Notes: generated by a model not told the origin, from the letters alone. A stretch of DNA of 64,000 bases from Pseudomonas aeruginosa PAO1 (GCF_000006765.1 NC_002516.2); one strand, 5' to 3'. Positions 1 to 30,783 are shown, numbered from the stretch's first letter. Program-made: numbers and translations.

Positions 1-985
1 CGCGCGGCGCCTGCCGACCTTCTCCGTGGACTTCCCCGGCGAAGGCCGCGGCTTCGTCCCGACGCCCTGGCAAAGCAGCTGGGACGAACCCTATGCGCAG
101 CTGGCGGCGAACTTCCTCGGTACGCCGCACCGTACCGTGCTGGTCGCCCCGGAAGAGGTGCTGGAACAGGACGAGGCGGTGCTCCAGGCCCGCGACCTGC
201 CCGGCTGGGGCGAGCTGGACGCCTCGCTCTACCTGCTGTTCCGCCAGGTCCGCGAGCACACCACGGTGGCACTGTCGGGCGAGTCGGCCGACGAGGTGTT
301 CGGCGGCTACCCGTTCTTCCACGACCCGAGCGCCCTCGCACACGACGGCTTCCCCTGGCTGGCCGGCAAGAGCGGGCCCTGGCAACTGCTGCGGCGGGAG
401 GTCGCCGAACGGGTGGCGGCGCCGGAATACATCCGGGCGCGCTACCGCGAGGCCCTCGCCGAAGTGCCGCGGCTGGATGGCGAGGATGCCGCCCAGCGAC
501 GCCAGCGCGAGGTCGCCTACCTGGCGCTGAGCCGCTGGCTGCCGGCGATGCTCGAACGCAAGGACCGGATGAGCATGGCGGTCGGCCTGGAAGTGCGCGT
601 GCCGTTCTGCGACCACCGCCTGGTGGAGTACGTATGGAACCTGCCCTGGGCGCTGAAGAGCGTCGCCGGGGAAAGCAAGAGCCTGCTGCGCCGGGCCCTG
701 CGCGGGCACCTGCCGCAGGCGATCCTGGAGCGGCGCAAGAGCGGTTTCCCGGCCAACCCCGACCCACGTTACCTGGCGCTGCTGCGCGAGCGGGTCGGCC
801 GCCTGCTCGACGACGGCCGCTCGCCGCTGTTCGAACTGGTGGACGCCGGGCGGGTCCGCCAGGCTCTCGAACAGGGCACGCCGCTGCCCAGCCCGCGTGC
901 CTCGGCGAGCCCGACCGCCGGCCTGGCCTACCTGCTGAACCTGGACCGCTGGCTGACCCGCCATGGGGTCGACATCAGCCTCTGA
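1..985 (+). CDS. Asparagine synthase (glutamine-hydrolysing)-like amidotransferase, C-terminal part (5' end outside window)
   Basis: Motifs LSGESADEVFGGY, KDRMSMAVGLEVRVPFCDH and RKSGFP of the AsnB synthetase domain; the ORF is open from the window edge. Confidence 0.9.
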   Translation, partial: ARRLPTFSVDFPGEGRGFVPTPWQSSWDEPYAQLAANFLGTPHRTVLVAPEEVLEQDEAVLQARDLPGWGELDASLYLLFRQVREHTTVALSGESADEVFGGYPFFHDPSALAHDGFPWLAGKSGPWQLLRREVAERVAAPEYIRARYREALAEVPRLDGEDAAQRRQREVAYLALSRWLPAMLERKDRMSMAVGLEVRVPFCDHRLVEYVWNLPWALKSVAGESKSLLRRALRGHLPQAILERRKSGFPANPDPRYLALLRERVGRLLDDGRSPLFELVDAGRVRQALEQGTPLPSPRASASPTAGLAYLLNLDRWLTRHGVDISL

Positions 986-1012
986 GCGGCACTTTCTTCC
1001 CGGAGGATACTC

Positions 1013-1522
1013 ATGAGCCTTGCCTTGTCCCGTCCCGACAGCGACCTGCTGGCGCGGGTCAGCGATTTCCTCGTCGCCGAAGCCGAGCTGCTCGACGACC
1101 GCCTGCTGGATACCTGGTTCGCGCTGTTCGAGCGCGCCGCACGCTACCGGGTGCTGCCCTTGCAGGAGCAACTGGCCGGCCAGGCGCCGGAGGACAGCCT
1201 GTACATCATCGACGACGACCACGTGCGCCTGCGCGAGCGGGTCGACAGCATCCTCGGCGGGCATACCTGGATGGAGCAGCCGCGCTCGCGCACCCGCCGC
1301 CTGGTGGGCAACGTGCGGCTGAAGCGGGTCGAGGGCGAACTGGTCAGCAGCCGCAGCAACTTCGTCGTCCATCAGTTCCGCAACCGCGAGGCCTGGAGCT
1401 TCGTCGGCGAAGCCAGTCATGTCCTGCGCGACGGCCCCGGGGGCTTGCGCATCGTCTCGCGGGAGATCCGCCTGGACCACGAGACCATCAGCGCCCAGCG
1501 GCGCATCAGCATCATCCTGTGA
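1013..1522 (+). CDS. Aromatic ring-hydroxylating (Rieske) dioxygenase beta subunit
   Basis: 169 aa; EAELLDDR..W, RLRERV, EQPRSRTRRLVGNV and C-terminal R-I-L pattern; GGAGG RBS. Confidence 0.88.
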   Translation: MSLALSRPDSDLLARVSDFLVAEAELLDDRLLDTWFALFERAARYRVLPLQEQLAGQAPEDSLYIIDDDHVRLRERVDSILGGHTWMEQPRSRTRRLVGNVRLKRVEGELVSSRSNFVVHQFRNREAWSFVGEASHVLRDGPGGLRIVSREIRLDHETISAQRRISIIL

Positions 1523-1532
1523 GGCGCCGCCC

Positions 1533-2435
1533 ATGAATACCGATCCGTTGCTGCCCGGCTTCGACTACCTGACCCTGCACACCTCCGCCGCGCGCCTCCG
1601 CGTCGCCGTGAAGGGCAGCGGCCCGCCGCTGCTGCTGTTGCATGGCTATCCGCAGACCCACCTGGCCTGGCATCGCATCGCTCCGCGCCTGGCCGAGGAC
1701 TACAGCGTGGTCCTCGCCGACCTGCGCGGCTATGGCGAATCGCGGGCGCTGGACGAGGAGGGCGCCGACTATTCCAAGGCCGCGCTGGCCCGCGACCAAC
1801 TGGAAACGATGGGCCAGCTAGGCTTCGAACGCTTCGCGGTGATCGGCCACGACCGCGGCGCGCGGGTCGGCTATCGCCTGGCGCTGGACCATCCGCAAGC
1901 GGTCGCGGCCTTCGTCTCGCTGACCGTGGTGCCGATCCTCGACAACTGGGCCGCGGTGAACAAGGTCTTCGCCCTCAACGCCTACCACTGGTTCCTCCTC
2001 GCCCAGCCGTACGACCTGCCGGAGCGCCTGATCGGCGCCGATCCGGAGCACTTCCTCGACTACACCCTGCGACGCATGGCCCAGGGCCGCGACATCTACC
2101 ACCCGCAGGCGCTGGAAAGTTACCGCCGGGCGTTCCGCGACCCCGCCGTGCGCCATGCGATGTGCGAGGACTACCGGGCCGCGGTGGGCGTCGATGCCGA
2201 CGCCGACCAGGCCGATCGCGACGCCGGCCGGCGCCTGCAATGCCCGGTCCAGGTGCTCTGGCAGGAGCGCCCCTACGCCGCCGGGCAGCATCCGCTGGAA
2301 ATCTGGAAGACCTGGGCCGGGCAGGTCGAGGGCGCCGCCATCGGCGCCAGCCACATGCTTCCCGAGGACGCGCCGGACGCCGTGCTGGAGCACCTGCTGG
2401 GGTTTCTCGCCAGCCACCGGGAGGCGCTCCGATGA
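1533..2435 (+). CDS. Alpha/beta hydrolase, haloacetate (fluoroacetate) dehalogenase / epoxide hydrolase family
   Basis: HGYPQTH oxyanion motif, GHDRGARV nucleophile elbow, YHWFLLAQP, EDYRA, catalytic His in SHMLPED; start chosen at MNTDPLL. Confidence 0.85.
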   Translation: MNTDPLLPGFDYLTLHTSAARLRVAVKGSGPPLLLLHGYPQTHLAWHRIAPRLAEDYSVVLADLRGYGESRALDEEGADYSKAALARDQLETMGQLGFERFAVIGHDRGARVGYRLALDHPQAVAAFVSLTVVPILDNWAAVNKVFALNAYHWFLLAQPYDLPERLIGADPEHFLDYTLRRMAQGRDIYHPQALESYRRAFRDPAVRHAMCEDYRAAVGVDADADQADRDAGRRLQCPVQVLWQERPYAAGQHPLEIWKTWAGQVEGAAIGASHMLPEDAPDAVLEHLLGFLASHREALR

Positions 2436-3088
2436 GCGCCGTCGAACGCGATCCGGCGGCGCAGGCGACGCTCTGGCGACAGCGGGTGTTCGAGGTGCAC
2501 GCGGCGATGTCCGCCTACGTCGCCGAGCGCCATCGGCGTGAAGACCTGGGGGACTGGGTGGCGACCAGCGCGCGGATATTCGCCGATCTGCCGGCGACCG
2601 ACGACCTGCGCGCCGAAGCCTGGCAGGCGGTGTTCTTCCGCGCCCAGGCGCTGATCGAACAGTTCATCGTCGCGCGCCCGGCGGATTACCGGCTCGACGA
2701 CTGGGCGCGCGCCACCGCGCGGATCTATCGCGCGCTGGAACCGGCGGGGCGGGGCGATCCGGCCAGCGCCGCCGACCGTCTGGCACGCCAGGCCGCGCTC
2801 TACGGTTCGCGTTTCGAGGTGCAGGCCGAGGCTGACGGGCGCGCGGTATTCCACAACCGTCACTGCGCGATCTGGGACTACCGCGAGCGCGCCCGCGCCC
2901 GAGGCGTGCCGATCACCCTGGAGTCGGCCTGCACCTATTGCACCAAGCTGCTGTCGGCGTTCGTCACCGCCAGCGATTGCCGCGCCGACTGGCGGCTCTA
3001 CGAAGAGCCGCAAGGCCACGGCTGCGTATGGACCATCACGGCGGACAGCCTCAACCAAGGAGCAGGCGTACATGAACGCGATCATTGA
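2432..3088 (+). CDS. Hypothetical protein with HC..C-x2-C motif (V4R / ATC-hydrolase-like fold suspected)
   Basis: ATGA overlap with the upstream gene, typical codon usage, 218 aa. Confidence 0.7.
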   Translation: MSAVERDPAAQATLWRQRVFEVHAAMSAYVAERHRREDLGDWVATSARIFADLPATDDLRAEAWQAVFFRAQALIEQFIVARPADYRLDDWARATARIYRALEPAGRGDPASAADRLARQAALYGSRFEVQAEADGRAVFHNRHCAIWDYRERARARGVPITLESACTYCTKLLSAFVTASDCRADWRLYEEPQGHGCVWTITADSLNQGAGVHERDH

Positions 3089-3920
3089 ACAGGCGCGCAG
3101 CCTGGACGGCTACCAGGATTCCAGCGAACTGCTGCAACGTCGCGACCAGGACTGGGTGCTCGACCGCGCCGGCATCGAGCCGCGCAGCCTGCTCGATCTC
3201 GGCTGCGGCATCGGCTCGCTGCTGCTCGGTGGCGCCCGGCGCTGGCCCGGCCTGCAACGGTTGTGGGGCATCGAACGTTCGCCGCTACGCCTGGAGCAGG
3301 CGCGCGCGCAGTTGCGCGGGGCTGGCGTCGAGGCGCGTCTGCTGGAGGGCGACCTGCTCGACCTGCCGCCGCTGGCGGAACGCTTCGAGCTGATCAGCAT
3401 GACCGCCGTGCTGCACTGGCTGTATCCCGATGAAGAGCGGCTGTTCCGGTGGGTCGCGCGGCACCTCGAGGCGCAGGGGGTATTCCTGTTCACCTCACAC
3501 CATCCGTTCGCCGAGGATGGCCTCGGCGGCGAGGACGACCTGGTCGCCCAGGCCCTGGTCGAGATGGGCCTGGCTGCGCCGGAACGGGTGGCGGCGCTCT
3601 ACGCGGAAGCCGGGCTGCTGCCGATGGGAACCCGCACCCGTGGCCGGGAGGCGTTGCGCGAACGCGTCGAACGACACTTCCGGGTCGACTCCATCGTCTC
3701 CCGCCCGGCGGTCCTGCGTGTCGCCGACTCCGCCGAATACCAGCGTTTCCACGCCGCCACCTTCGGCACCTATTTCGCACCGCTGGTGCCGGCGACGCGC
3801 CTGGAGGAATTCTTCGTCCGCCTCGGGCGGATCGCCGAGCGGCGCATGCAGGCCGACGGACAGGTCAGCGAAATCCCGGTCAGTGTCTGGCGCTGCCGGG
3901 CTCGGGAGGGCGAGGCATAA
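3072..3920 (+). CDS. Class I SAM-dependent methyltransferase
   Basis: Motif I LLDLGCGIG, EGDLLDL, TAVLHW. Confidence 0.88.
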   Translation: MNAIIEQARSLDGYQDSSELLQRRDQDWVLDRAGIEPRSLLDLGCGIGSLLLGGARRWPGLQRLWGIERSPLRLEQARAQLRGAGVEARLLEGDLLDLPPLAERFELISMTAVLHWLYPDEERLFRWVARHLEAQGVFLFTSHHPFAEDGLGGEDDLVAQALVEMGLAAPERVAALYAEAGLLPMGTRTRGREALRERVERHFRVDSIVSRPAVLRVADSAEYQRFHAATFGTYFAPLVPATRLEEFFVRLGRIAERRMQADGQVSEIPVSVWRCRAREGEA

Positions 3921-4011
3921 CCTTATGCGCAATCGGTCTGCCGCGCGGCTGAAAATCGGTACGGGCAATTGCACTCGGTGGCATCCGCAACCGATCAAGG
4001 ATGAACCGACC

Positions 4012-6663
4012 ATGTCCAACCCGCGTTCGCCACGTCTTCGACTTGTCCCCGTGCTCTGCGCGGTCGGCCTGGCCTGCCTTGGCCAGCCCGGCGAGTCGGC
4101 GGCAGAGGAGGTCCGCGCCACCAGCAGCGCCGAGATCCAGCGCTTCGACATCCCGGCCGGCGAACTGGCCCAGGTACTGCTGAGCATAGTCCGCCAGAGT
4201 CGCACCCCGATCGCCTTCGACCAGCACCTGGTGGAGGGCCTGCCGGCACCGGCGATCCAGGGCTCCTACAGCGTCGAGCAGGCGCTGCAGCGGGCCTTGC
4301 AGGGCAGCGGCCTGGAATACAGCCGCAGCGCCGCCGGCGTGCTCAGCCTGCAACGCGCCACGGCGCCGGATGCCGCGCTGCCGGCGGCGAAGCCCGCCGG
4401 GACCCTGGCCACGGTGGTGGTCACCGGCACCCGCAAGGCCGATGTCAAGGCCGGCGAGAGCCTGGCACCGATCGATGTGGTCAGCGCCGAGCAATTGCGC
4501 GACAGTGGTAGCGGCGACCTGCGCGACGCCCTGGTGCGCCTGCTGCCCTCGCTGTCGCGCCAGGCCCAGGCCTACAACGCTTCGGCGCTGACCAACGCGC
4601 AGTCGCTGCGCGGCCTGAGTCCCAACCACGTGCTGGTGCTGGTGAACGGCAAGCGCCGTCACGAGACCGCCAACATCAATGTCAGCGGCGGGCTGCAGAG
4701 CGGCTCCACCGGGGTCGACCTGGATACCATCCCGCTCGCCGCCATCGAGCGCATCGAGGTGCTGCGCGACGGCGCCTCGGCGCAGTACGGCTCGGACGCC
4801 ATCGCCGGGGTGATCAACGTCATCCTCAAGTCGGCCGACCACGGCGGCCGGCTCGCCTACGACAACGGTCGCTACGGCGATGGCGACGGCCTGACCCAGA
4901 ACGGCGGGGTGAATGGCGGCCTGCGTTTCGGCGAGAGCGGTTTCCTCAACCTCAGCGCGCAGTTCCGCGAACAGGCGCGGACCATCCGCGCCGGCATCGA
5001 CCAGCGTACCGGGCACTACGGCAACCCGTCCATCGGCGACCCTTCGCTGCACCGCCAGGCGCTGGCCTACAACGCCGGCGTGGCGCTGGACGACAACGTC
5101 GAGCTGTACAGCTTCGCCACCTATACCCATCGCTCGGTGTCCTCGGCGCAGATCTACCAGTTGCCGTCCCTGGCGCCGCGACTCTATCCGAACGGCTTCA
5201 CCCCGCGCATCACCAGCGACGAGGACGACTATTCGCTGACCCTCGGCGCCCGTGGCGGCGAGCTGTTCGGCGCCTGGGACTGGGACCTCAGTTCGACCTA
5301 CGGTGCCGACCGCCCGGAGATCGGCATGGACCATTCGATCAACCTCGCCCTCTACGGCGAGACCGGCGATTCGCCGCGCTCCTTCGACCTGGCGCGCTAC
5401 AAGGCCACCCAGTGGACCAACAATCTCGACCTGCGCCGCGACTTCGACCTCGCCTGGCTGCCGGCGCCGCTGAATTTCTCCTGGGGCCTGGAGCAGCGCC
5501 GCGAGCTCTACGAGGTCGAGGCCGGCGATCCTTGGTCCTACTACAACGGCGGTTCCAAGGCACTCCCCGGGCAGGCGCCGGCCACCGCCGGACAGTGGAG
5601 CCGCGACGTGCTCGGCGCCTATCTCGACCTGTCCATCGCCCTCGACGAGCGCTGGCAACTGGAGACGGCGGCGCGCTACGAGCACTACAGCGACTTCGGC
5701 AGCACCACCAACGGCAAGCTCGCCAGCCGCTACCGCTTCAGCCCCGAGGTATCGGCGCGGGCCAGTCTCAGCAGCGGCTTCCGCGCGCCGTCGCTGGCCC
5801 AGGAGAACTACACCAGCCTGGGCGTCTCGCCGACCATCGCCAGCGGCCTGCTGGCGGTCAACTCGCCGGCGGCCAGGCTGCTCGGCGCCGAAGACCTGGA
5901 GCCGGAAAAATCGATCAGCTACAACCTCGGCCTGGTGCTCGATCCCTTGCCGGACCTGAACCTGGCCATCGACGCCTATCGCATCGAGATCCGCGACCGC
6001 ATCGTCGACGGTGCCACCTATTCCGGACAGCCGGCGATCGATGCGCTGCGCGCCGGCGGGATCAGCATCCCGGCCGGACTGACCCAGGTCAGCACCCACT
6101 ACATGACCAACGGCGCCGACACCCGTACCCACGGCCTCGACCTCACCGCCAGCTACCTGACCCGGCTCGGCGAGTGGGGCCGGATCGACTGGCGCCTGGG
6201 CGCCAACGTCAATCGCACGAAGCTGGTCAGGAATCATCGCGGGCGCAACGGCCAGCCGCTGCTCAACGACCAGCAGCAGGCCTGGATCACCAGCTCCACG
6301 CCGCGCAGCCAGGTCAGCCTGCAGGCCGACTGGAGTTACCGGCGCTGGGGCCTGACCCTGCGCGAAACGCGCTACAGCAAGACGGTTTCCGAACTGGACT
6401 ACTACACCGGCGAGCATGCCTATTCGACCACGGTCTTCAACCGCTTCGAGAACTCGCCCAAGTACATCACCGACGTTGCCCTGCGCTATGCGGCGAGCCG
6501 CAACCTGACCCTGAGCGCCGGGGCCAACAATCTGTTCGACGTGAAGCCCGACAAGCTGCCGGCCGAGAGCGCCTACCTCGGCTTCAACCAGTACGACACC
6601 TATGCCTCGCAGATCAGCTTCAACGGCGCCTTCTACTACCTCGGCGCGGCCTACACCTTCTAA
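4012..6663 (+). CDS. TonB-dependent receptor/transducer with N-terminal signalling (STN) domain
   Basis: Signal peptide, FDIPAGEL STN domain, TonB box VVVTGTR, plug motif IERIEVLRDGASAQYGSDAIAGVINVI, C-terminal Phe. Confidence 0.93.
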   Translation: MSNPRSPRLRLVPVLCAVGLACLGQPGESAAEEVRATSSAEIQRFDIPAGELAQVLLSIVRQSRTPIAFDQHLVEGLPAPAIQGSYSVEQALQRALQGSGLEYSRSAAGVLSLQRATAPDAALPAAKPAGTLATVVVTGTRKADVKAGESLAPIDVVSAEQLRDSGSGDLRDALVRLLPSLSRQAQAYNASALTNAQSLRGLSPNHVLVLVNGKRRHETANINVSGGLQSGSTGVDLDTIPLAAIERIEVLRDGASAQYGSDAIAGVINVILKSADHGGRLAYDNGRYGDGDGLTQNGGVNGGLRFGESGFLNLSAQFREQARTIRAGIDQRTGHYGNPSIGDPSLHRQALAYNAGVALDDNVELYSFATYTHRSVSSAQIYQLPSLAPRLYPNGFTPRITSDEDDYSLTLGARGGELFGAWDWDLSSTYGADRPEIGMDHSINLALYGETGDSPRSFDLARYKATQWTNNLDLRRDFDLAWLPAPLNFSWGLEQRRELYEVEAGDPWSYYNGGSKALPGQAPATAGQWSRDVLGAYLDLSIALDERWQLETAARYEHYSDFGSTTNGKLASRYRFSPEVSARASLSSGFRAPSLAQENYTSLGVSPTIASGLLAVNSPAARLLGAEDLEPEKSISYNLGLVLDPLPDLNLAIDAYRIEIRDRIVDGATYSGQPAIDALRAGGISIPAGLTQVSTHYMTNGADTRTHGLDLTASYLTRLGEWGRIDWRLGANVNRTKLVRNHRGRNGQPLLNDQQQAWITSSTPRSQVSLQADWSYRRWGLTLRETRYSKTVSELDYYTGEHAYSTTVFNRFENSPKYITDVALRYAASRNLTLSAGANNLFDVKPDKLPAESAYLGFNQYDTYASQISFNGAFYYLGAAYTF

Positions 6664-6675
6664 GGAGGACGAACC

Positions 6676-7755
6676 ATGAGCATCGAACTGCGCGGCGGCG
6701 TGCGCGCCTCCGCAGTCATCGGCGACAGTGCCTTCGCCCGCCAGGCCGCGCGTTTCCTGCCGGACACCCGCAGTCGCGCGGTGAGCGCCTTCGACATCCA
6801 GCAGAAGGCCCGCCTGGAAGAGGCGGACGGCCTCGACGGCGCGCTGTTCACCGTTTCCGCTGCCTGGCCCGACCCCTGGCTGGTCGCCGGCTGGGCTTTG
6901 GCCGCGGCGCCGCGCCTGCGCGCCACCGTCGCGCACCGACCGGGGAGCGCCCAGCCGACCGTTGCCGCGCGCGCCCTGGCCACTCTCGACGGCCTGTCCA
7001 ACGGGCGCGCCGGCGTACACCTGGTGATCGGCTCCAGCGACGCCGACGTGCGCCGCGACGGCGACTTCGCCGACAAGGACGAACGCTACCGGCGCGCCGT
7101 GGAGTACCTGGAGGTCTTCACCCGCGCCCTGGAAAGCCGCGAACCCTTCGACTACCACGGCGAGTTCTACCGGCTGGAGGACGCCGGCAGCGGCTTCCTG
7201 CCGATCCAGCGGCCGCGCCCGCCGCTATCCGTTGGCGGCTCCTCGGCGCAGGCACAACGCCTGGCGGTGCGCTTCGCCGACGTCTACGCCGGCCACTTCG
7301 CCAGCCCCACGCAGACCGCGGAGCTCAAGCGCAGGCTGAACGAGGAGGCGGCGGAGCAGGGACGGCGGCTGAAGTTCTGGAAGCACTTCCAGGTGATCCT
7401 CGGCGACAGTCCGGCGGCGGCCCTGGACATCGCCGAGCACTACCGCCAGGCCGCTTTCGAACTGCTTCTGGCACGGCCCCTCGACGAACTGGCGGCATCG
7501 CCGCAGGTCGCCCGCGACGGCGAGCGCGACCGGCTCGCCCGGCTGGAGCCGGAGGCCTTGCGCGAATGGGTGGCGAATACCGTGCAGCGCAGCTTCGCCG
7601 GGGTGCTGGTGGGCAGCGTCGGCGAGGTGGCGGAACAGATCCTGGCCTTTCATCGCGCCGGCATCGAGATCGTCCAGCTTGAGGCCACCACCGAGAACGC
7701 CGAGGACATCCGCTTGCGCCGCCAACTGATCGAGCGCCTGAGGCGCGTCGCATGA
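6676..7755 (+). CDS. Luciferase-like flavin-dependent monooxygenase (SsuD/MsuD-like)
   Basis: HRPG, LATLDGLSNGR, ERYRRAVEYLEV, FDYHGEFY, GGSS and LVGS motifs. Confidence 0.85.
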   Translation: MSIELRGGVRASAVIGDSAFARQAARFLPDTRSRAVSAFDIQQKARLEEADGLDGALFTVSAAWPDPWLVAGWALAAAPRLRATVAHRPGSAQPTVAARALATLDGLSNGRAGVHLVIGSSDADVRRDGDFADKDERYRRAVEYLEVFTRALESREPFDYHGEFYRLEDAGSGFLPIQRPRPPLSVGGSSAQAQRLAVRFADVYAGHFASPTQTAELKRRLNEEAAEQGRRLKFWKHFQVILGDSPAAALDIAEHYRQAAFELLLARPLDELAASPQVARDGERDRLARLEPEALREWVANTVQRSFAGVLVGSVGEVAEQILAFHRAGIEIVQLEATTENAEDIRLRRQLIERLRRVA

Positions 7756-9035
7756 GCGGCGTCGCCCGCGAGGCCATGGAGGACGTCGCGCCGGCGGCGC
7801 CTGGCGTCGGCGAGTTCGGCGTGGCCAGTTGTGGGGTGCTGCTGGCCTCGGTAGTGGGGGTGATCTTCGGCCCCACCGGGCTGGTGATCAGCAGCTTCTC
7901 GCTGTTCATCGAGCCGATCGCTGCCGACCTGGACTGGGACCGCGGCCAGTCGGCGCTGCCGGTGACCCTGCTGGGCCTGGCGGTAGCCCTGAGCAGCCCG
8001 CTGAAGGGCTGGCTGGTGGATCGCTGGGGCGCGCGCGCCCTGGTCCTGCCGCTGACCGCCGCGCTGGCCCTGTGCCTGGCCAGCCTGGCGCTGGCGCGCA
8101 GCGGCTGGCAGCTATACCTGCTGTTCGCGCTGCTCGGCCTGCTGACGCCGGGCAACATTCCCTATGCGCGGATTCTCGGCGGCTGGTTCGAGCGTCGTCG
8201 CGGCGCGGCCTACGGCATCCTCGGACTCGGCTTCGGCGTCGGCGGGCCGCTGGCGCTGTACCTGGGCAGCGCCTGCATCGACGCCTTCGGCTGGCGCGCC
8301 ACCTTCCTCGTCTATGGCCTGCTCGAAGGCCTCCTGGCGCTGCCGCTGCTCTATGCGTTGTTCCGCGAGCGACCCGGCGACCTGCCGCAGGCGCGGCGCA
8401 CGCCAGCCGACGCGCTGCCCGGAGCGACGCCAGGCCAGGCCTGGCGCTCGGCGGACTTCTGGCTGATCGTCGGCAACCTGATCCTCGGCGTGTTCGCCGT
8501 CACTGGCGTGATGGTGCATGGCGTGCCGCTGTTGCAGGAGCGCGGCCTGTCGCGGGAAGTCGCCACCGACGTGCTGGCGGCGCTGTGGGTCGGCATGATC
8601 GTTTCGCAACCGGCGCTGGGCTACCTGCTGGACCGCTACGACACCCCGCGCATCGCCTTGCCGTTCGCCCTGCTGGCGGCGCTCGGGCTGCTGCTCCTGC
8701 TCCTTGGCGGACCGCCGGCGCTGCTCTGGGGCGCGGTGTTCCTGATCGGCCTGGGCGCCGGCGGCGAGACCGGCACCACCCAGTACTTCGTCAGCCGCTA
8801 CTTCGGCCTGCGCCATTTCAGCGTGATCTATGGCTCGATCCAGCCCTTCACCTTCGCCATCGCCATCAGCCTGGGGTCCTGGCTGCTGGGTTACTTCTAC
8901 GACCGCGCGGGCTCCTACGCGGGCTCGACGCTGGTCCTGCTCGGCGCGTTCGGCGTGGCGGCAGGGCTGCTGGTCATGCTCGGGCGCTATCGCTACGCCA
9001 TCGACGGGGAGGCACGCAGCCATGGGCGAGACTGA
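7752..9035 (+). CDS. MFS transporter
   Basis: About 12 hydrophobic segments; GWLVDRWGAR and GYLLDRYD motif A. Confidence 0.88.
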   Translation: MSGVAREAMEDVAPAAPGVGEFGVASCGVLLASVVGVIFGPTGLVISSFSLFIEPIAADLDWDRGQSALPVTLLGLAVALSSPLKGWLVDRWGARALVLPLTAALALCLASLALARSGWQLYLLFALLGLLTPGNIPYARILGGWFERRRGAAYGILGLGFGVGGPLALYLGSACIDAFGWRATFLVYGLLEGLLALPLLYALFRERPGDLPQARRTPADALPGATPGQAWRSADFWLIVGNLILGVFAVTGVMVHGVPLLQERGLSREVATDVLAALWVGMIVSQPALGYLLDRYDTPRIALPFALLAALGLLLLLLGGPPALLWGAVFLIGLGAGGETGTTQYFVSRYFGLRHFSVIYGSIQPFTFAIAISLGSWLLGYFYDRAGSYAGSTLVLLGAFGVAAGLLVMLGRYRYAIDGEARSHGRD

Positions 9036-10215
9036 ACGGAGCAGGGCGGAGGTCGGCGTCTGGCTGCTGGCCGGACTGGCCTTCGTGGTCGGCACGGTGG
9101 AACTGGTGGTGGCCGGGGTGCTCGACGAACTGGCCGCCAGTTTCGCCGTCAGCCAGGGCCGGGCCGGGTTGCTGATGAGCCTGTACGCGCTGGTCTATGC
9201 GCTGCTCGGCCCGCTGCTGGTCTACCTCAGCGCCGGTATCGAGCGCCGCCGCCTGCTGGCCGGCGCGCTGCTGGTGTTCGTCGGCGCCAACCTGGCCAGC
9301 GCCGCCGCGCCGAGCTTCGCCCTGTTGCTGGCGAGCCGGCTGCTGGTGGCGGCCAGCGCCTCGGTCATCGTGGTGGTGGCGATCACCCTGGCGGTGGCCA
9401 TTGTCGCGCCGGAACGGCGCGGCCGGGCGATCGGTCTGGTGTTCGCCGGCATCGTCGCCTCGCTGGTGCTGGGCGTACCGCTGGGCACCCTGATCGGCGA
9501 GTTCTGGGGCTGGCGTAGCCTGTTCCTGCTGCTCGCCGGGGTCGCGTTGCTCGGCCTGCCGCTGCTCCTGCGCCTGCTGCCGGCCATCCCCGGCGCGCCC
9601 GGCATCGCCCCGGCGGAGCAACTGCGGGCGCTGGCCCGGGGCCGGGTGCCGTTCGCCCACCTGGCATCGCTGTTGCAGATGACCGGCCAGTTCACCGTCT
9701 ACACCTACATCGTGCCGTTCCTGGTCGGCAGCATGGCCCTCGACAAACCGACCATCAGCCTGGTCCTGCTGGTCTACGGGGGCGGCGGCATCCTCGGCGC
9801 GCTGCTCGGCGGACGCGCCGCCGACCGCTGGCCGGGGCCGGCCACCTTCGTCGCCTTCCTGCTCCTGCACGCACTGGCCCTGGTCCTGCTGCCGTTCGCC
9901 ACCGGCGGCCTGCCGCTGCTGCTGGGCGCGGTGGTGTTCTGGTGCGTGTTCAACATGGCGCCGGGGCCGGCGATCCAGAAATACCTGGTGGAACTCAGCC
10001 CGGACACCGCGGCGATCCAGATCAGCCTCAACACCAGCGCGATCCAGCTCGGCGTGGCCCTGGGCGCCTTCATCGGCGCGATCCTGGTGGACCAGGTGGC
10101 GGTGCGCGCGCTCCCCTGGTGGGGCGCCGCGCTGATCCTCGGCGCCGCCGCCTGCGGCTGGCTGTCCGCGCAGCGGCCGGCGGGCACGGCGGACTGCCGG
10201 GAGCGCCTCGATTGA
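9022..10215 (+). CDS. MFS transporter (DHA1/NepI-like efflux)
   Basis: Hydrophobic segments, ERRGRAIG, LGVPLGT, WRSLF; start at MGETERS. Confidence 0.88.
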   Translation: MGETERSRAEVGVWLLAGLAFVVGTVELVVAGVLDELAASFAVSQGRAGLLMSLYALVYALLGPLLVYLSAGIERRRLLAGALLVFVGANLASAAAPSFALLLASRLLVAASASVIVVVAITLAVAIVAPERRGRAIGLVFAGIVASLVLGVPLGTLIGEFWGWRSLFLLLAGVALLGLPLLLRLLPAIPGAPGIAPAEQLRALARGRVPFAHLASLLQMTGQFTVYTYIVPFLVGSMALDKPTISLVLLVYGGGGILGALLGGRAADRWPGPATFVAFLLLHALALVLLPFATGGLPLLLGAVVFWCVFNMAPGPAIQKYLVELSPDTAAIQISLNTSAIQLGVALGAFIGAILVDQVAVRALPWWGAALILGAAACGWLSAQRPAGTADCRERLD

Positions 10216-10317
10216 TTCCCTACCGCGCGTCACGGGAACAGCCCCGGGCGCCGTTCCTCAACCTCCAGGCTCACTACCGCTATCCGTGGCGTGGCCTGCC
10301 AGCAGCGAACGCTTACC

Positions 10318-10827
10318 ATGGATAGCCAAGGCTCCATCAAGAACACCCTGATCGCCCAGTTGTTCCAGCAGAACTACGACTGGCTGTGCAAGAAGCTGTC
10401 CTACCAGACCGGCTGTAGCCACAGCGCCGAAGACCTCGCCGCCGAGGCCTTCCTGCAGGTCTGGATGCTCCCCGACCCGGCGTCGATCCGCTCGCCGCGG
10501 GCGTTCCTCGCGACCATCGCGCAACGCCTGATGTACGAGAGCTGGCGGCGCAAGGACCTGGAGCGCGCCTACCTGCAGATCCTCGCCGAGGCTCCGGAGG
10601 CGGTGCAGCCGTCGCCTCACGAGCAGTGGATGCTGATCGAGAGCCTGCAAGCCATCGACCGCCTGCTCGACGGCCTGTCCGGGCAGGCCAGGGCAGTGTT
10701 CCTGATGAGCCAGCTGGAAGGCCTGACCTACGTGCAGATCGGCGAACGCCTCGGATTGTCCCTGGGGCGCATCCACCAGTTGATGAAGGATGCCTTGCAC
10801 TGCTGCTACCGGGGATTCCAGGAATGA
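10318..10827 (+). CDS. ECF sigma-70 factor, FecI type
   Basis: AEDLAAEAF, PRAFLATIA, region 4 FLMSQLEGLTY. Confidence 0.92.
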   Translation: MDSQGSIKNTLIAQLFQQNYDWLCKKLSYQTGCSHSAEDLAAEAFLQVWMLPDPASIRSPRAFLATIAQRLMYESWRRKDLERAYLQILAEAPEAVQPSPHEQWMLIESLQAIDRLLDGLSGQARAVFLMSQLEGLTYVQIGERLGLSLGRIHQLMKDALHCCYRGFQE

Positions 10828-11780
10828 GCGAGAAGCCGGAACGGCAACGCATCGTCGAGGAGGCCATCGAATGGATGGTGCGCCTGCAATCCGGCGACTT
10901 CAGCGCCGCCGAGGGCGATGCCCTGGAACGCTGGAAGGCGCTGTCGAGCGAGCATGCCGAGGTGTTCCGGCAACTGCTTGGCAGCCTCGCGCCGCTACAG
11001 GACTCGCCCTGGCGCGGCCAGCCGAGCGCTACCGTGCTGCGCGCCCTGGAGCAGCCGTCGAGCCGCCGGCGCTTCGTCGGCGGCGCCCTCGGGCTGTTCG
11101 TCCTGCTCGCCGGCGGCGCCGGCCTGGAGCGCTGGGTCCAGGCCGGCATGGGTCTGCCCGGCGAACTGGCGACAGGCACCGGCGAGCGCCGCGACTGGTT
11201 GCTGGCCGACGGCAGCCGCCTGCGCCTGAACGCGCGGAGCAAGGTGCGACCGCTGCTCGACGGCGCCCAGCGACGCCTGGAGCTGCGGCGCGGCGCGATG
11301 CGCCTGGAAGTGAAGGAGGACCCGCGCGGCGCCTTCGCCCTCGACTGCGCCGCCGGACGGGTGGACTGCGCCAGCGGCAGCCTGCTGCTGGCCGAGGAGC
11401 GCGGGGCGATCCGCCTGGTGACCCTGCGCGGCAGCGCGCGGCTGACCACCGGTGAGGGACGCCAGCTGGCGGTGGCGGCACGACGTAGCCTGCTGTTCGA
11501 TGCCGGCGGCCTGCTCGAACAGGGCCCGATGCAGGCCGGAGAGGATGCCTGGGCCAGCGGCTGGCTGGAGGTCCACGACCGCTCCCTGGCCTGGGTCGCG
11601 GAGGCCTTCCGGCCCTATCTGCCAGGCATCCTCCAGCTCGACGCGGAGATCGCCGGCAACCGCGTCAGCGGTCTGTTCCCGCTGGACGACATGCACACGT
11701 CCCTGGACATGCTCGGACGCAGCCTGCCGATCCGCGTGCTGCGCTACAGCGACTACTGGATCAGCCTGCGCCCCGCCTGA
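10824..11780 (+). CDS. FecR-family anti-sigma / transmembrane sensor
   Basis: EAIEWMVRL, TGTGERR..LADGSRLRLNARS, W..GWL, RVSGLF; ATGA overlap with the sigma gene. Confidence 0.92.
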   Translation: MSEKPERQRIVEEAIEWMVRLQSGDFSAAEGDALERWKALSSEHAEVFRQLLGSLAPLQDSPWRGQPSATVLRALEQPSSRRRFVGGALGLFVLLAGGAGLERWVQAGMGLPGELATGTGERRDWLLADGSRLRLNARSKVRPLLDGAQRRLELRRGAMRLEVKEDPRGAFALDCAAGRVDCASGSLLLAEERGAIRLVTLRGSARLTTGEGRQLAVAARRSLLFDAGGLLEQGPMQAGEDAWASGWLEVHDRSLAWVAEAFRPYLPGILQLDAEIAGNRVSGLFPLDDMHTSLDMLGRSLPIRVLRYSDYWISLRPA

Positions 11781-11781
11781 C

Positions 11782-12627
11782 TCATTCGTCGAAGAACAGC
11801 AGGCAACGCAGTTCGATACTCTGCCGCGGCGGCGCATCGGCCGGGGTGCAGGGATCGTCGAAGGCGGTGTGCGCGCCGAGGCGGGCCTGCGCGTCCTCCC
11901 GCGAATCGTAGATCTTCAGCAGCAGCGCTTCCTCCGGCAGCAGGTGCGGGTAGTAGTACCAGCGGTGCTCCGGGTTGGGCTTGACCGAGTAGGTTTCGCC
12001 CACCTTGTCACGGTACACCAGGTCACTGGCCACCAGGTCGTCGAACGCCAGGCTGCGGGCGTCCAGCAACGCCAGCGGCGCGCGCTGCGCCGGGTGGCCG
12101 AACGGACGCCACAGGTTGACGATCTGGAAGCGTCCGGCCAGGCGCCGTTCGGCGCGTTCCGCCGGCAGGTGGTCGCGGACCCGGCGCGGCGCCGAGCGCA
12201 GGGTCTGGTCGTTGTGCACGTAGCGCACCGGTTCGCGCAGGCCGCGTTCTTCGCGCCCGGCCTGGTCGACGCGCAGCGTGTGGTCGAAGATCACCGCCTC
12301 GGCGGCGCCGGTCAGGCGGCGGAGCAGGGCGATGCTTTCCGGGTAGTAGCGTTCACGAACCTGGGCTTCATCCTCGAAATCGCCCACCGCGCTCGCCTCG
12401 CGCACCAGTTGGAAACCCTCGCGCTCCAGGCTGGCCGGTTGCGCCAGCAGACGCGCATTGCGGATCGCCACCCGGGTCGGCTGCAACAGCGCGCTGCGCT
12501 GCGGCGTCCCGGCAGGGGCCGGATAGGTGTAGGCGACCGGCCGTTGGCCGTTGTCGCGGATATAGTTGACCTCGGCCTCGACCTGCTCCGGCGCGTGCGC
12601 CGGCCATGCGTGTTGCTGGCAACCCAT
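11782..12627 (-). CDS. CmcJ/NvfI-family putative Fe(II)/2-oxoglutarate oxidoreductase
   Basis: FDHTLR, HND (HxD), VNLWRP, AHTAF and RQSIELR motifs. Confidence 0.7.
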   Translation of the reverse strand: MGCQQHAWPAHAPEQVEAEVNYIRDNGQRPVAYTYPAPAGTPQRSALLQPTRVAIRNARLLAQPASLEREGFQLVREASAVGDFEDEAQVRERYYPESIALLRRLTGAAEAVIFDHTLRVDQAGREERGLREPVRYVHNDQTLRSAPRRVRDHLPAERAERRLAGRFQIVNLWRPFGHPAQRAPLALLDARSLAFDDLVASDLVYRDKVGETYSVKPNPEHRWYYYPHLLPEEALLLKIYDSREDAQARLGAHTAFDDPCTPADAPPRQSIELRCLLFFDE

Positions 12628-12775: not shown

Positions 12776-13810
12776 TCAGGACATCGCGTCGAGTCGTCGC
12801 CGCTGGCGATACTGGCGCGGCGTCATGCCTTTCCAGCGCCTGAAGGCATGGCTGAAGTTGGACACCTCGCCGTAGCCGAGGCGCTCGGCGATCTCCTCCA
12901 GGCGAATCGCGCCGGTGGCCAGCAGCTCTTCGGCGAGGGCCTGGCGCACCTCGTCGAGCAACAGGCGGTAGCTGCTGCCCTCGTCGTCCAGGCGGCGACG
13001 CAGGGTACGCACGGTGAGGTGCAGTTCCATGGCCAGGGTCTGCATGTCCGGCAAGTGGCCGGGCGTCCTCAGCAAGCGGTCGCGGATGCGTCCGGCCAGA
13101 CCGCCGCGCACCTGGCGGCGGGCGAGCAGGGCGCGGCACTGCTCCTCGCAGGCGCGCGCCACCTCTGGATTGGCGCCGGGCAGCGGGAGGTCGAGGAAGC
13201 GCCGTTCGAAGACCACCCGGTTGTCCGCCTGGCCGAACGCCGGGCACAGGCCCAGCTCGCGCACGTAGGGCGCGGGATCGGCGGGCGGTGGGCGGCGGAA
13301 GCCGGCGCGGAGGATCGGCAGGCGCTGCCCGGTGAGGTCGCGCTGGATGCGCAGCACGCCACCGGCGTCGCGTTCGAGGAGGAAAATCCGCAGGTCCTCG
13401 GGAATGCCGGCGTCGTCGAGCACCAGGTGCGCTTCATCGTCGTGTACCTCCAGGCGGATGCCATGGAAGGCGAAGGTCAGGTCGAGGTAGCGCAGGCCCA
13501 GTTGCGCGGCGCTGAGGAAGGTCGGGCTGCTGAGCAGGGCGAAGCCCCAGATGCCGTAGGCGTTGAGGTGATAGCGCAGGCCTGCCGCCAGGCCCGGCGC
13601 GCAGGCGTCGCCCAGGTGCCGGACCAGGTTGCGCACTACGCTCAGTTCCTGGGCCGCGTCGATTTCCCCGGAGGGATCGCCGAGCAGGCGGATATCCAGG
13701 CCGCTACCTGCCAGGCACTGCTCCAGGCCGAGGCCGCGGTCGATGCCGAACTGGATCAGCAGGTGCGCGCTGATGGCGCTGCGGCGGGGAGACCAGGGCG
13801 GAGTGGGCAT
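12776..13810 (-). CDS. AraC-family regulator (arabinose-binding-like N-domain, OruR/VqsM type)
   Basis: YGIWGFALLSSPT N-domain; C-terminal double HTH LTVRTLRRRL / LGYGEVSNFSHAFRRW. Confidence 0.92.
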   Translation of the reverse strand: MPTPPWSPRRSAISAHLLIQFGIDRGLGLEQCLAGSGLDIRLLGDPSGEIDAAQELSVVRNLVRHLGDACAPGLAAGLRYHLNAYGIWGFALLSSPTFLSAAQLGLRYLDLTFAFHGIRLEVHDDEAHLVLDDAGIPEDLRIFLLERDAGGVLRIQRDLTGQRLPILRAGFRRPPPADPAPYVRELGLCPAFGQADNRVVFERRFLDLPLPGANPEVARACEEQCRALLARRQVRGGLAGRIRDRLLRTPGHLPDMQTLAMELHLTVRTLRRRLDDEGSSYRLLLDEVRQALAEELLATGAIRLEEIAERLGYGEVSNFSHAFRRWKGMTPRQYRQRRRLDAMS

Positions 13811-26585: not shown

Positions 26586-27062
26586 TCAGTCGGCGCGGCC
26601 GCTACGCAACTGGTCGGCCAGTTCGCGGTGGTGGTAGAAGCGCGCCAGCCATTCGTCGGCGAAGCGGCGCAGGTCAGGATCGGCGGAGTCCCGGGCGATT
26701 CCCTCGAAGCGTGCAACCAGACGGTCCTGCTGGCGAATCTGCGCGTCGAGGAAACCGCGCTCGTCGAAGCCGCCGGGAGCGGCGGCCTGCCGTTCGGTCT
26801 GGCGCGGCGAGGGCAGCGCCAAGGCCTTTTCCCCGGCCAGGGCGCGTAACTGGTGGTCGAACTCCTGCTGTTCGGTGAGTACGCGCTTGGCATAGAGCTG
26901 CACCGCCTTGTTTTCGGATCGGCGCATGGCTTGCTCGGCTGCCTCCACCTGGGCCTGGCTGTCGGCCAGGCTGTCGGCGAGCAGGGCGCGGGTATCAGCG
27001 GGTTCGGCCTGGACGGCCAGGGGCAACAGCAGGGCGGCGATCAGTGACAGGCGACTGGGCAT
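26586..27062 (-). CDS. DUF4142-family exported protein
   Basis: Signal peptide (VQA|E), helical ferritin-like pattern similar to the ORF at 55536. Confidence 0.7.
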   Translation of the reverse strand: MPSRLSLIAALLLPLAVQAEPADTRALLADSLADSQAQVEAAEQAMRRSENKAVQLYAKRVLTEQQEFDHQLRALAGEKALALPSPRQTERQAAAPGGFDERGFLDAQIRQQDRLVARFEGIARDSADPDLRRFADEWLARFYHHRELADQLRSGRAD

Positions 27063-29553: not shown

Positions 29554-30783
29554 TCACCACAGCGCCAGGCTGTAGCTGAGGATCAGGCGATTTTCGTCGA
29601 GGTCGTTGGCGAAATTCGAACGCACCGTGGCGTTGCGCCATTTCACCCCGAGGTTCTTCAGCGGCCCGCTCTGCACCACGTAGCCGAGGTCGGTGTTGCG
29701 TTCCCATTCCTTGCCGTCGTTGGCCGCGCCGCGGGCGACGTTGTCGCCGGAGACGTAGCGGCTCATGAAGCTCAGGCCGGGCAGGCCGAGCGCGCCGAAA
29801 TCGTAGTCGTAGCGCAGTTGCCAGGAACGCTCGTCGACGTTGCCGAAGTCGCCGATCTGGATGAAGTTGACCAGGTACGGGTCGCTGCCGGCGATGTAGG
29901 GATAGGGATCGTCGCCACTGATCCGCTGGTAGCCGGCGGCCACCGCGTGGGCGCCCAGGCGCAGGCTGAAGAGGGCGCCGAAGGCGCGGTTGTCCAGTTC
30001 GCGGAAGCCGCCGTCCTCGCTGGCCCGGGCGAAGCGCAGGTCGCTCTTGAGCGAACGCTGTCCGCCGAGGTCGAGGGTGTGTACCAGGCCGGCGAAGGTC
30101 TGTCGGTAGATGTCCTTGAGCCGACCCTGGTGCAGGCTGGCGGTCAGCGCCGGGGTCAGGCGATAGTCGCCGCCGGCGAAGTCGAAGGCATCGCTGCGCC
30201 CGCCGATGCGGTTGGCGCTGAACACCTGGTAGTCGCTGGAGCTGTTCAGCTTGTTGCGGTCCAGGTGCGCGCCGCGCAGGGTCAGGCCGTCGATCTCCTG
30301 CACGTCGAGCAGCGCGCCACGGAACAGTTCCGGCAGCAGGCGGGTGTCGTTGGCCGAGACCAGCGGGCTCTTGAAGTGCAGCGCGCCGACCTTGAGCAGG
30401 CTGTTGGAGACCCGCGCCTTGGCGGTCAGGCCGAGCTTGGCGTAGTCATCCTGGGAGCCGCCGGCGGAGCCGTCGGCCGGCAGCAGCCCGGTTCCTCCGC
30501 TGCCGCTGCCGGAGTCGAGCTTGAAGCCGAGCAGGCCGATGGCGTCGACGCCGAAGCCGACGGTGCCTTCGCTGAAGCCGGACTCCAGGCGCAGGAGGAA
30601 GCCCTGCGCCCATTCGTCGGCGTTGTCGCGCGCGCCGCTCTGGCGGAAGTCGCGATTGAAGTAGAAGTTGCGCAGTTCGAGGCTGGCGTGGCTGTCCTCG
30701 ACCAGGTCGGCCTGGGCGAGCAGCGGCCAGCCCAGCCCGCTGCCGGCGAGCAGCGCGGCAGCCAGGCGGGGAGTGGGATGCAT
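29554..30783 (-). CDS. opdO: OprD-family outer-membrane porin (pyroglutamate porin)
   Basis: LELRNFYFNRD, EWAQGF, DERSWQLRYDYDF, WERNTD, DENRLILSY; context with pxpABC. Confidence 0.88.
   Translation of the reverse strand: MHPTPRLAAALLAGSGLGWPLLAQADLVEDSHASLELRNFYFNRDFRQSGARDNADEWAQGFLLRLESGFSEGTVGFGVDAIGLLGFKLDSGSGSGGTGLLPADGSAGGSQDDYAKLGLTAKARVSNSLLKVGALHFKSPLVSANDTRLLPELFRGALLDVQEIDGLTLRGAHLDRNKLNSSSDYQVFSANRIGGRSDAFDFAGGDYRLTPALTASLHQGRLKDIYRQTFAGLVHTLDLGGQRSLKSDLRFARASEDGGFRELDNRAFGALFSLRLGAHAVAAGYQRISGDDPYPYIAGSDPYLVNFIQIGDFGNVDERSWQLRYDYDFGALGLPGLSFMSRYVSGDNVARGAANDGKEWERNTDLGYVVQSGPLKNLGVKWRNATVRSNFANDLDENRLILSYSLALW

Follow-up and report, generated by a model that had tools for sequence, protein, structure and literature searches.

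The first 11,780 nucleotides of a 64,000-nucleotide stretch of the Pseudomonas aeruginosa PAO1 genome (GCF_000006765.1, NC_002516.2; hereafter the window, with positions counted from its first letter) carry the locus PA2083–PA2094, whose 5′ end lies just upstream of the window and which belongs to the sulfur-starvation regulon and not to an iron system. In the reading that we prefer, and to which we give about an even chance, the locus would serve the surface-signalling-gated import and oxygenolytic desulfurisation of an organosulfur compound, probably an aromatic carboxylate. The analysis shows which genes are present, that they match the published locus, that their proteins spare sulfur, that they are kept together in distant phyla and that the receptor gene has promoter elements of its own; the induction by sulfur starvation is taken from the literature. 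While the locus and that induction are already known, four points are new here: the conservation of the core across phyla, the accompanying depletion of cysteine and methionine, the promoter elements shared by the receptor gene and a distant paralog, and the lack of the catalytic Arg/His pair of SsuD in the monooxygenase.

Genes were identified by Pfam scans and their junctions were read in the sequence. All of them lie on the plus strand as a single densely packed run, with a G+C content of about 70% in the first 11.8 kb. The run enters the window within an AsnB-like glutamine-dependent amidotransferase (PA2084-like; Asn_synthase C-terminal domain at 2–985, cut by the window edge, E 4.5e-83), followed by the beta subunit of a Rieske ring-hydroxylating oxygenase (PA2085-like, 1013–1522; Ring_hydroxyl_B, E 4.6e-43), an alpha/beta hydrolase of the Asp-nucleophile type (PA2086-like, 1533–2435; Abhydrolase_1, E 6.6e-25), a protein of 218 amino acids referred to below as the Cys4 protein (PA2087-like, 2432–3088) and a class I S-adenosylmethionine (SAM)-dependent methyltransferase (PA2088-like, 3072–3920; Methyltransf_25/11, E 1e-14). 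These genes are succeeded by a TonB-dependent transducer of 883 amino acids (PA2089/OptL-like, 4012–6663; STN, Plug and TonB_dep_Rec_b-barrel), a luciferase-like flavin monooxygenase (PA2090-like, 6676–7755; Bac_luciferase, E 1.4e-47) and two transporters of the major facilitator superfamily (MFS; MFS_1 in both), one of the OFA (oxalate/formate-lactate) type (PA2091-like, 7752–9035) and one of the DHA1 efflux type resembling Cmx, SotB and MxcK (PA2092-like, 9022–10215). A FecI-type extracytoplasmic function (ECF) sigma factor (PA2093-like, 10318–10827; Sigma70_r2 and Sigma70_r4) and a FecR-type transmembrane anti-sigma factor (PA2094-like, 10824–11780; DUF4880 and FecR) complete the run.

A sequence-only reading of the same stretch had described a near-contiguous, largely coupled run from the amidotransferase to the FecI/FecR pair. 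Every gene that it listed was confirmed by the scans, and the 218-residue gene between the hydrolase and the methyltransferase, which it had overlooked, was added. The coupling was borne out by ATGA overlaps at 2432, 7752 and 10824 and by overlaps of 17 nt at 3072 and 14 nt at 9022; true intergenic gaps precede only the receptor gene (91 nt) and the sigma gene (102 nt), the other gaps being 10–27 nt. The upstream flank and all genome-wide counts were taken from a near-identical genome (G001, one contig of 6.3 Mb), which matches the first 1.5 kb of the window at 100% identity. There, the sequence before the window edge supplies the part of the amidotransferase that was cut off, its glutaminase domain, and then encodes the Rieske alpha subunit and a regulator of the Lrp/AsnC type, with a kynureninase gene beyond them.

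The order and products of the 12 genes from the Rieske alpha subunit onward agree one for one with the published PA2083–PA2094. The published product names are a Rieske subunit (PA2083), an asparagine synthetase (PA2084), a small subunit (PA2085), an epoxide hydrolase (PA2086), an 'ATC hydrolase' (PA2087), an STN receptor (PA2089, which carries the published name OptL), a luciferase-like protein (PA2090) and an ECF sigma factor (PA2093). Judged by this gene-by-gene correspondence, we regard the identification as secure, and the label 'orphan' that the sequence-only reading had attached to the system has to be withdrawn, the locus being already in the literature under these numbers.

The published record places this block in the response to sulfur limitation. 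PA2083–PA2094 has been labelled a predicted 'extracellular sulfate locus' (PMC6555301), and PA2093 is induced by sulfate limitation according to Tralau 2007, in the passage of PMC6555301 that cites it. In the supplements of PMC12581299, the RNA log2 fold changes in sulfur-starved PAO1 were +4.59 for PA2083, +3.69 for PA2084, +3.27 for PA2086, +3.19 for PA2087, +3.02 for PA2089, +3.64 for PA2090, +3.28 for PA2093 and +3.20 for PA2094, that is, an 8- to 24-fold rise for eight genes of the block. At the protein level, log2 fold changes of +1.2 to +4.0 were given for PA2083–87, PA2089, PA2090 and PA2093, and the pyoverdine and pyochelin genes drop by about 3 log2 units (about 8- to 16-fold) in the same table (PMC12581299). 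The block genes are also co-regulated in PA14 in published data. As read from these data sets, the block is induced when sulfate or cysteine is lacking, which is the mark of the sulfate-starvation-induced (SSI) regulon.

The sequence-only reading had proposed that induction be compared under sulfur, iron and phosphorus limitation, and the sulfur part of that comparison is thus answered in print for both RNA and protein (PMC12581299, PMC6555301). It had also noted the lack of a Fur box, of a nonribosomal peptide synthetase (NRPS) or NRPS-independent siderophore (NIS) synthetase, and of any obvious iron product, and all three observations held. Against the 19-mer Fur consensus, no site in the locus scores above 12/19, and the site with that score lies within coding sequence; the DNA that precedes the sigma gene is rich in G+C. 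Neither an NRPS nor an NIS synthetase was found in the locus, in positions 1–13 kb of the window or in the 13 kb upstream. The locus is not an iron system because it has neither a Fur box nor such a synthetase, and the published sulfur-starvation data, which do not cover iron limitation, show the locus rising while the pvd and pch genes fall.

Proteins induced by sulfur starvation are poor in cysteine and methionine, and the structural proteins of this locus follow the pattern. Cys and Met together make up 1.26% of the ten structural proteins when these are pooled, whereas 33 further open reading frames (ORFs) in the window have a median of 2.8% (p 0.0015 in a one-sided Mann-Whitney test). The monooxygenase contains no cysteine or methionine in the 358 residues after its initiator (0.00%), the Rieske beta subunit has 1 in 169 residues, the amidotransferase 7 in 610 and the receptor 2 Cys and 2 Met in 883 (0.45%). 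Outer-membrane proteins are Cys-poor as a class, as the OprD porin in the window illustrates (0.25%), so the low value of the receptor weighs less than those of the other proteins. The regulators are not depleted, as expected for their kind (5.4% in the ECF sigma factor), and the Cys4 protein retains its invariant cysteines despite the depletion throughout the locus. Elsewhere in the window, low values were also noted in the OprD-family porin itself (29554–30783, minus strand), where they are probably a class effect, in a DUF4142 protein (26586–27062, minus strand; 0.64%) and in a GMC oxidoreductase (42209–43846, plus strand; 0.92%).

The same depletion is seen in actinobacterial orthologs. 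Across about 78 loci, the median Cys+Met content is 0.19% for the solute-binding protein, 0.27% for the luciferase-like monooxygenase, 0.38% for the ATPase, 0.57% for the permease, 0.71% for the methyltransferase, 0.86% for the MFS protein, 1.15% for the HpaB-type hydroxylase and 1.20% for the AsnB-like amidotransferase; the comparison values are 2.0% for flanking genes and 2.07% for the MmyB-type regulator. The depletion in both phyla is the compositional mark of sulfur-starvation proteins.

These orthologs were reached by a search with the 218-residue Cys4 protein, one genome per species, which returned 110 relatives; 80 loci were then compared by tblastn with all proteins of the locus. The sequence-only reading had made its proposal depend on co-conservation of the genes in other genomes, and this is what the comparison found. 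A core made of the Cys4 protein, the AsnB-like amidotransferase, an aromatic oxygenase, the methyltransferase, the SsuD-like monooxygenase, a high-affinity importer and a Cmx-like MFS transporter recurs in Pseudomonas sp. LRF_L74, in Methylosinus and in about 77 actinobacterial species. Strain LRF_L74 carries the complete cluster, including the ECF and FecR genes, with a second receptor and OFA-type MFS pair upstream. Methylosinus sp. Sm6 has all the enzymes, the monooxygenase, both MFS proteins and two receptors without an STN domain; no sigma gene was found within range of its cluster, and a phage-integrase fragment just upstream (L005:4061–4798) hints at an island. In Streptomyces, Kitasatospora and other actinobacteria, the genes run from the Cys4 protein through the amidotransferase, a flavin reductase and an HpaB-type hydroxylase to the methyltransferase. 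This run is usually divergent from a family-5 solute-binding ATP-binding cassette (ABC) importer, which is followed by two luciferase-like enzymes, one being the ortholog of the window monooxygenase and the other of F420 type. MmyB- and LuxR-type regulators and a Cmx-like MFS protein are also present.

In the actinobacteria, the HpaB-type enzyme takes the place of the non-homologous Rieske oxygenase in an otherwise retained core, and this replacement argues that hydroxylation of an aromatic compound is common to the clusters. Among 34 species of the window's narrow genus, the Cys4 gene occurs in only one, and this patchy distribution, together with the integrase fragment in Methylosinus, suggests horizontal spread. 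A literature search found no described Streptomyces counterpart. A functional link of the locus to the adjacent kynR/kynU genes was considered and set aside, since the adjacency is absent in LRF_L74 and in Methylosinus.

The combination of an STN receptor with a FecI/FecR pair was taken by the sequence-only reading as a cell-surface signalling circuit, and all the domain evidence fits. In the receptor, the STN domain (E 8.5e-11) occupies about residues 67–115 and is followed by the Plug domain and the barrel; by family, the protein weakly resembles heme, FepA-type and B12 receptors. The sigma and anti-sigma genes are adjacent and coupled by an ATGA overlap, the former having regions 2 and 4 and the latter DUF4880 and FecR. 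A paralogous module elsewhere in the genome (L084:3820–7795; G001:C1:2563320–2567295) consists of an STN receptor 65% identical to this one and then an OFA-type MFS protein with 60% identity; its neighbours are a gene for a 268-residue LuxR-type regulator and an AraC gene in convergent orientation, and it lacks a sigma/anti-sigma pair of its own. The AraC protein beside this module shares 34% identity with the AraC-type regulator that lies just past our locus and is convergent with it (12776–13810, minus strand), a protein with an arabinose-binding-like domain. The paralogous module is probably PA2590 and its neighbour. PMC6555301 also ties PA2590 to PA2093. According to a preprint, a PA2590 transposon mutant reached a reduced bacterial load in a model of corneal infection, and iron or B12 uptake was proposed for PA2590 from docking only.

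An OFA-type MFS copy also follows the second receptor of LRF_L74, and this duplication of the pair as a unit argues that receptor and OFA-type MFS form one import unit. The OFA-type protein, whose nearest NCBIfam families are lactate and oxalate/formate transporters, is thus the probable inner-membrane importer paired with the receptor. The nearest NCBIfam families of the DHA1-type protein are SotB, Cmx/CmrA and MxcK, and the MFS protein beside the actinobacterial clusters has its best match in the Cmx/CmrA family too; judged by these families, the DHA1-type protein is probably an exporter.

The DNA before the receptor gene carries a control region (3915–3976) that is conserved upstream of receptor genes. 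It comprises a palindrome, GCATAACCTTATGC (GCATAA-NN-TTATGC), at 3915–3928 and, 20 nt downstream, the motif CTGAAAA-N13-ATTGCACTC at 3949–3976, which ends 35 nt before the ATG. Palindrome and motif are conserved at four receptor genes in two species, namely the PA2089-like gene, its P. aeruginosa paralog and both receptors of LRF_L74. In G001, the motif has 3 matches and the palindrome 2 sites, against 0 for reversed-pattern controls; in the window, the motif occurs once, against 0.01 expected. The two elements stand together before this receptor and before its 65%-identical paralog, and nowhere else in G001. We infer a private ECF-dependent promoter plus the site of a dedicated dimeric regulator, with a putative start predicted near 3983.

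Other conserved DNA was also observed. A 33-nt block before the sigma gene (10266–10298), bordered by CAGGC/GCCTG inverted ends, is 100% identical in LRF_L74, although the flanking proteins are 56–84% identical; it has no matching Rfam family. Conserved blocks, for example TTATTAGCTAA, lie upstream of the Rieske gene, where a sigma-54 promoter seen by eye was rejected for its wrong spacing and lack of conservation. No sigma-70 promoter consensus was found in the 13 kb scanned, and the one terminator-like match there lies inside a coding region and falls short of the 3.9 expected from shuffles. All 24 RNA runs found consist of assembled contigs and hence give no starts, strands or levels; in the four runs mapped, contigs spanning 2400–5717 are present. 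Their common break at about 5690–5718 more likely reflects the repeat shared with the paralogous receptor than a transcript end.

Among the enzymes, the amidotransferase has a full length of 610 residues, its N-terminus lying upstream of the window and read in G001. There, the protein starts with MCG, in which the Cys is the nucleophile, and matches GATase_7 (E 2.8e-45), as is characteristic of class II (N-terminal nucleophile, Ntn) amidotransferases of AsnB type. It is 55% identical to the orthologs in the actinobacterial clusters (range 53–58%). With a paralog that its own genome encodes at about 67 kb, and that we take to be the phenazine-1-carboxamide-forming PhzH, it shares 44% identity over 606 residues. 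This relationship suggests by analogy that the enzyme amidates an aromatic carboxylate. The Rieske alpha subunit (Rieske and Ring_hydroxyl_A) lies outside the window at L003:1476–2750 on the minus strand, which makes the alpha/beta pair complete; its nearest named families are the large subunits of benzoate and anthranilate 1,2-dioxygenases, both matched far below cut-offs. The motifs HGYP and GHDRG in the hydrolase indicate an Asp-nucleophile enzyme like an epoxide hydrolase or dehalogenase, and this gene stands beside the core in only 12 of the 80 related loci. The methyltransferase is 40–49% identical to its actinobacterial orthologs, and in NCBIfam it comes closest to the carboxyl O-methyltransferases Tam and BioC, again far below cut-off. 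The best matches of the monooxygenase in the PDB are MsuD and SsuD (E 1e-36). The active site of SsuD includes Cys54, Arg226, His228 and Arg297 in E. coli numbering. Across 47 orthologs, the monooxygenase has Trp, His, Gln (Thr in actinobacteria) and Arg at these positions, and its sequence marks it as a separate subfamily, a divergent relative of SsuD/MsuD.

The Cys4 protein is the most cluster-specific gene product of the locus. No sequence match was found in Pfam, NCBIfam or the PDB, and its residues H144, C145, C167, C170 and C198 are invariant in 18 homologs. Its AlphaFold2 (AF2) model (predicted local distance difference test, pLDDT, 84.7) matches only H-NOX proteins over the full length of the fold, and weakly so (Foldseek E 1e-3, TM 0.4; VIA Z 7.8). 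The model thus gives weak grounds for an H-NOX/V4R-like fold, and no function follows from matches of this strength. UniProt automatically names PA2087 an L-2-amino-thiazoline-4-carboxylate (ATC) hydrolase, and the language-model similarity of the Cys4 protein to clusters with that name is 0.88–0.91. Assignment to this family (PF14196) was rejected and is kept as a lead only, there being no Pfam match even at E 10 in the 18 homologs. A single open frame of 539 amino acids in Methylosinus sp. Sm6 (L005:9938–11557) joins the Cys4 protein to the methyltransferase. This natural fusion is the sole evidence that the Cys4 protein may be a partner of the methyltransferase; a predicted complex of the two scored 0.00, which counts neither for nor against binding.

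Taken together, these features can be arranged into the following scheme. Under sulfur limitation, the whole block would be transcribed, the sigma/anti-sigma pair included, and the STN receptor (PA2089/OptL) would bind an extracellular organosulfur compound, presumably an aromatic carboxylate. The signal would pass from the receptor to the FecR-type PA2094 and on to the ECF sigma factor PA2093, which may then boost the receptor promoter here and at the paralogous receptor–MFS module. The receptor would carry the compound over the outer membrane and the OFA-type MFS protein, putatively, over the inner one. Its sulfur would be released by the Rieske alpha/beta enzyme and the divergent SsuD-like monooxygenase, in an order that may differ from the one named; the carbon skeleton would be modified by the amidotransferase, the methyltransferase with its Cys4 partner and the hydrolase, and the DHA1-type MFS protein would presumably expel the remainder.

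Several observations weigh against this scheme. ATP-dependent amidation and SAM-dependent methylation look biosynthetic and are unusual in a scavenging pathway, and the Cmx-like exporter that is kept with the core in three lineages fits the secretion of a product as well as the disposal of a by-product. The monooxygenase scores 152–153 bits against the SsuD and MsuD families of NCBIfam, whose cut-offs are 518 and 510, and it lacks both the catalytic Arg226/His228 pair and Cys54 of SsuD; for these two reasons, desulfonation is not assured. No cognate reductase or ferredoxin for the Rieske oxygenase was found in the locus or its flanks, so the oxygenase must borrow an electron-transfer partner. 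The promoter assignment is insecure because a third copy of the motif (L003:2900–2924, plus strand), located about 150 nt ahead of the Rieske alpha gene, lies on the strand opposite to that operon; this copy is conserved in LRF_L74 (L004:5138–5162, minus strand) and might serve divergent transcription or the binding of a factor. The PA numbers were assigned through gene order, product names and one near-identical P. aeruginosa protein fragment named by NCBI, and not through an annotated record.

The amidotransferase, the methyltransferase and the conserved exporter fit at least as naturally into a cycle in which a compound is made, exported and recaptured. Here, a four-enzyme module active under sulfur starvation (the Cys4 protein with its methyltransferase, the amidotransferase and the aromatic oxygenase) would start from a primary aromatic acid and turn it, by hydroxylation, amidation and methylation, into a small aromatic metabolite, which the DHA1-type MFS protein would secrete. 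Outside the cell the metabolite would capture or mobilise sulfur, and the loaded form would return through the receptor and the OFA-type MFS protein (the ABC importer in actinobacteria), be sensed by the surface-signalling circuit and be stripped of its sulfur by the SsuD-like monooxygenase. We judge such a cycle unlikely overall, while recognising what speaks for it: an amidotransferase, a methyltransferase and a hydroxylase are tailoring enzymes typical of biosynthesis, the 44%-identical amidotransferase paralog is presumably the phenazine-tailoring PhzH, a Cmx/CmrA-family exporter stands beside the core in Pseudomonas, Methylosinus and actinobacteria with a high-affinity importer adjacent in every case, self-induction by a receptor with an ECF/FecR pair is the classic logic for recovering a secreted chelator of one's own, and all these proteins, the exporter too, are depleted in Cys and Met. 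However, the locus has no scaffold-forming enzyme, a sulfur-capturing metabolite of such a kind is known from no organism, and none has been reported from the much-studied P. aeruginosa; the hydrolase and the oxygenases suit catabolism too, and the exporter can be explained by disposal of a desulfurised skeleton. The broader proposition that the seven-part conserved module is the sulfur counterpart of a siderophore system, in P. aeruginosa, Methylosinus and many Streptomyces and Kitasatospora, is somewhat more doubtful still.

Two further explanations appear far less probable than either the import and desulfurisation of an organosulfur compound or the export–recapture cycle. That the product is a siderophore or metal chelator after all, of catechol type and made with the oxygenase, with induction by sulfur starvation as a side effect, would agree with a layout like that of siderophore loci, with the weak resemblance of the receptor to heme, FepA-type and B12 receptors and with the docking-based iron/B12 proposal for PA2590. 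Against this stand the poor Fur match inside genes and the missing NRPS/NIS synthetase, the rise of the locus in sulfur starvation while pyoverdine and pyochelin genes fall, the sulfur-sparing composition kept across phyla and the published finding that plasmid-borne expression of PA2089 did not sensitise cells to siderophore-drug conjugates. Equally improbable is an aromatic catabolic operon for carbon use that happens to lie beside an unrelated transport and regulation cassette. The kinship of the Rieske alpha/beta enzyme with benzoate and anthranilate dioxygenases, the presence of a hydrolase, the adjoining kynurenine genes of P. aeruginosa and the automatic clustering of locus genes under xylene/chlorobenzene degradation (PMC12581299 supplements) would all be accounted for. 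Yet the locus lacks a ring-cleavage dioxygenase, a dihydrodiol dehydrogenase and a reductase component, the kyn adjacency is not kept in LRF_L74 or Methylosinus, and the inducer is sulfur starvation, not a carbon source. Moreover, the actinobacteria use HpaB and a flavin reductase in place of the Rieske enzyme while they keep the amidotransferase, the methyltransferase, the Cys4 protein, the monooxygenase and the transporters. A tetrapyrrole substrate, to which weak BchO, heme-receptor and H-NOX resemblances had pointed, was dropped for want of a link to sulfur.

In the surroundings of the locus, a 281-residue ORF without a family (11782–12627, minus strand) is convergent with it. Further into the window, between 17000 and 20000, the G+C content falls from about 70% to 57–61%, which may mark foreign DNA. 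In the upstream flank in G001, the kynureninase gene (L003:4206–5456, plus strand) and two genes for RoxA-like di-heme cytochromes c (7304–9178 and 9194–11122, both plus strand) lie on the strand opposite to the locus.

With importer and exporter, the core found in three distant lineages ranks among the more widespread sulfur-starvation modules lacking a known substrate. In P. aeruginosa, the system may also matter for infection: conditions mimicking a shortage of sulfur induce the locus, and PA2590, implicated in corneal burden, shares the putative private promoter with PA2089.

Compared with known systems, the amidotransferase resembles PhzH, as we take the paralog to be, in being a full-length class II glutamine amidotransferase with an N-terminal Cys nucleophile; in contrast, it is nearer to its actinobacterial orthologs (55%) than to that paralog and belongs to a sulfur-regulated locus without phenazine genes. 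The Cys4 protein is similar to the ATC hydrolase family PF14196 in size and by language model, and the link, if real, would lead to thiazoline-ring chemistry, whereas the Cys4 protein matches no profile or solved structure and its four invariant cysteines have no described counterpart. If a compound is indeed made and recaptured, the nearest parallels would be the opine-metallophore systems for staphylopine (Cnt) and pseudopaline (CntOLMI), in which a few enzymes act on a primary metabolite, a dedicated exporter secretes the product and reimport proceeds by a TonB receptor in Gram-negative or a family-5 solute-binding ABC importer in Gram-positive bacteria. The enzymes of those systems are unrelated to the present ones, and their regulation is by zinc or other metals and not by sulfur; the product here is hypothetical.

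The sulfur-scavenging systems ssuEADCBF, msuEDC, sfnFG, tauABCD and atsA share with this locus the induction by sulfur limitation, the Cys/Met-poor proteins and a flavin-dependent luciferase-like monooxygenase. Unlike them, the Pseudomonas locus would import through a TonB receptor and an MFS protein instead of an ABC transporter, would be gated by surface signalling and has no flavin reductase; its monooxygenase is without Cys54, Arg226 and His228 of SsuD, and its amidotransferase, methyltransferase, Cys4 protein and Rieske oxygenase are absent from those known systems. With FecA–FecR–FecI and the Fox, Fiu, Fpv and Hxu systems of P. aeruginosa, it has in common the STN transducer, an anti-sigma factor with DUF4880 and FecR, a coupled FecI-type sigma factor and, putatively, a dedicated promoter before the receptor gene. 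It differs from these systems in having no Fur box at the sigma or receptor gene, in being induced by sulfur and not by iron starvation, in carrying its receptor inside an enzyme operon and in a single sigma/anti-sigma pair that appears to serve two receptor–MFS modules. Definition of the ligand would make this the first cell-surface signalling system in P. aeruginosa with a proven non-metal nutrient signal.

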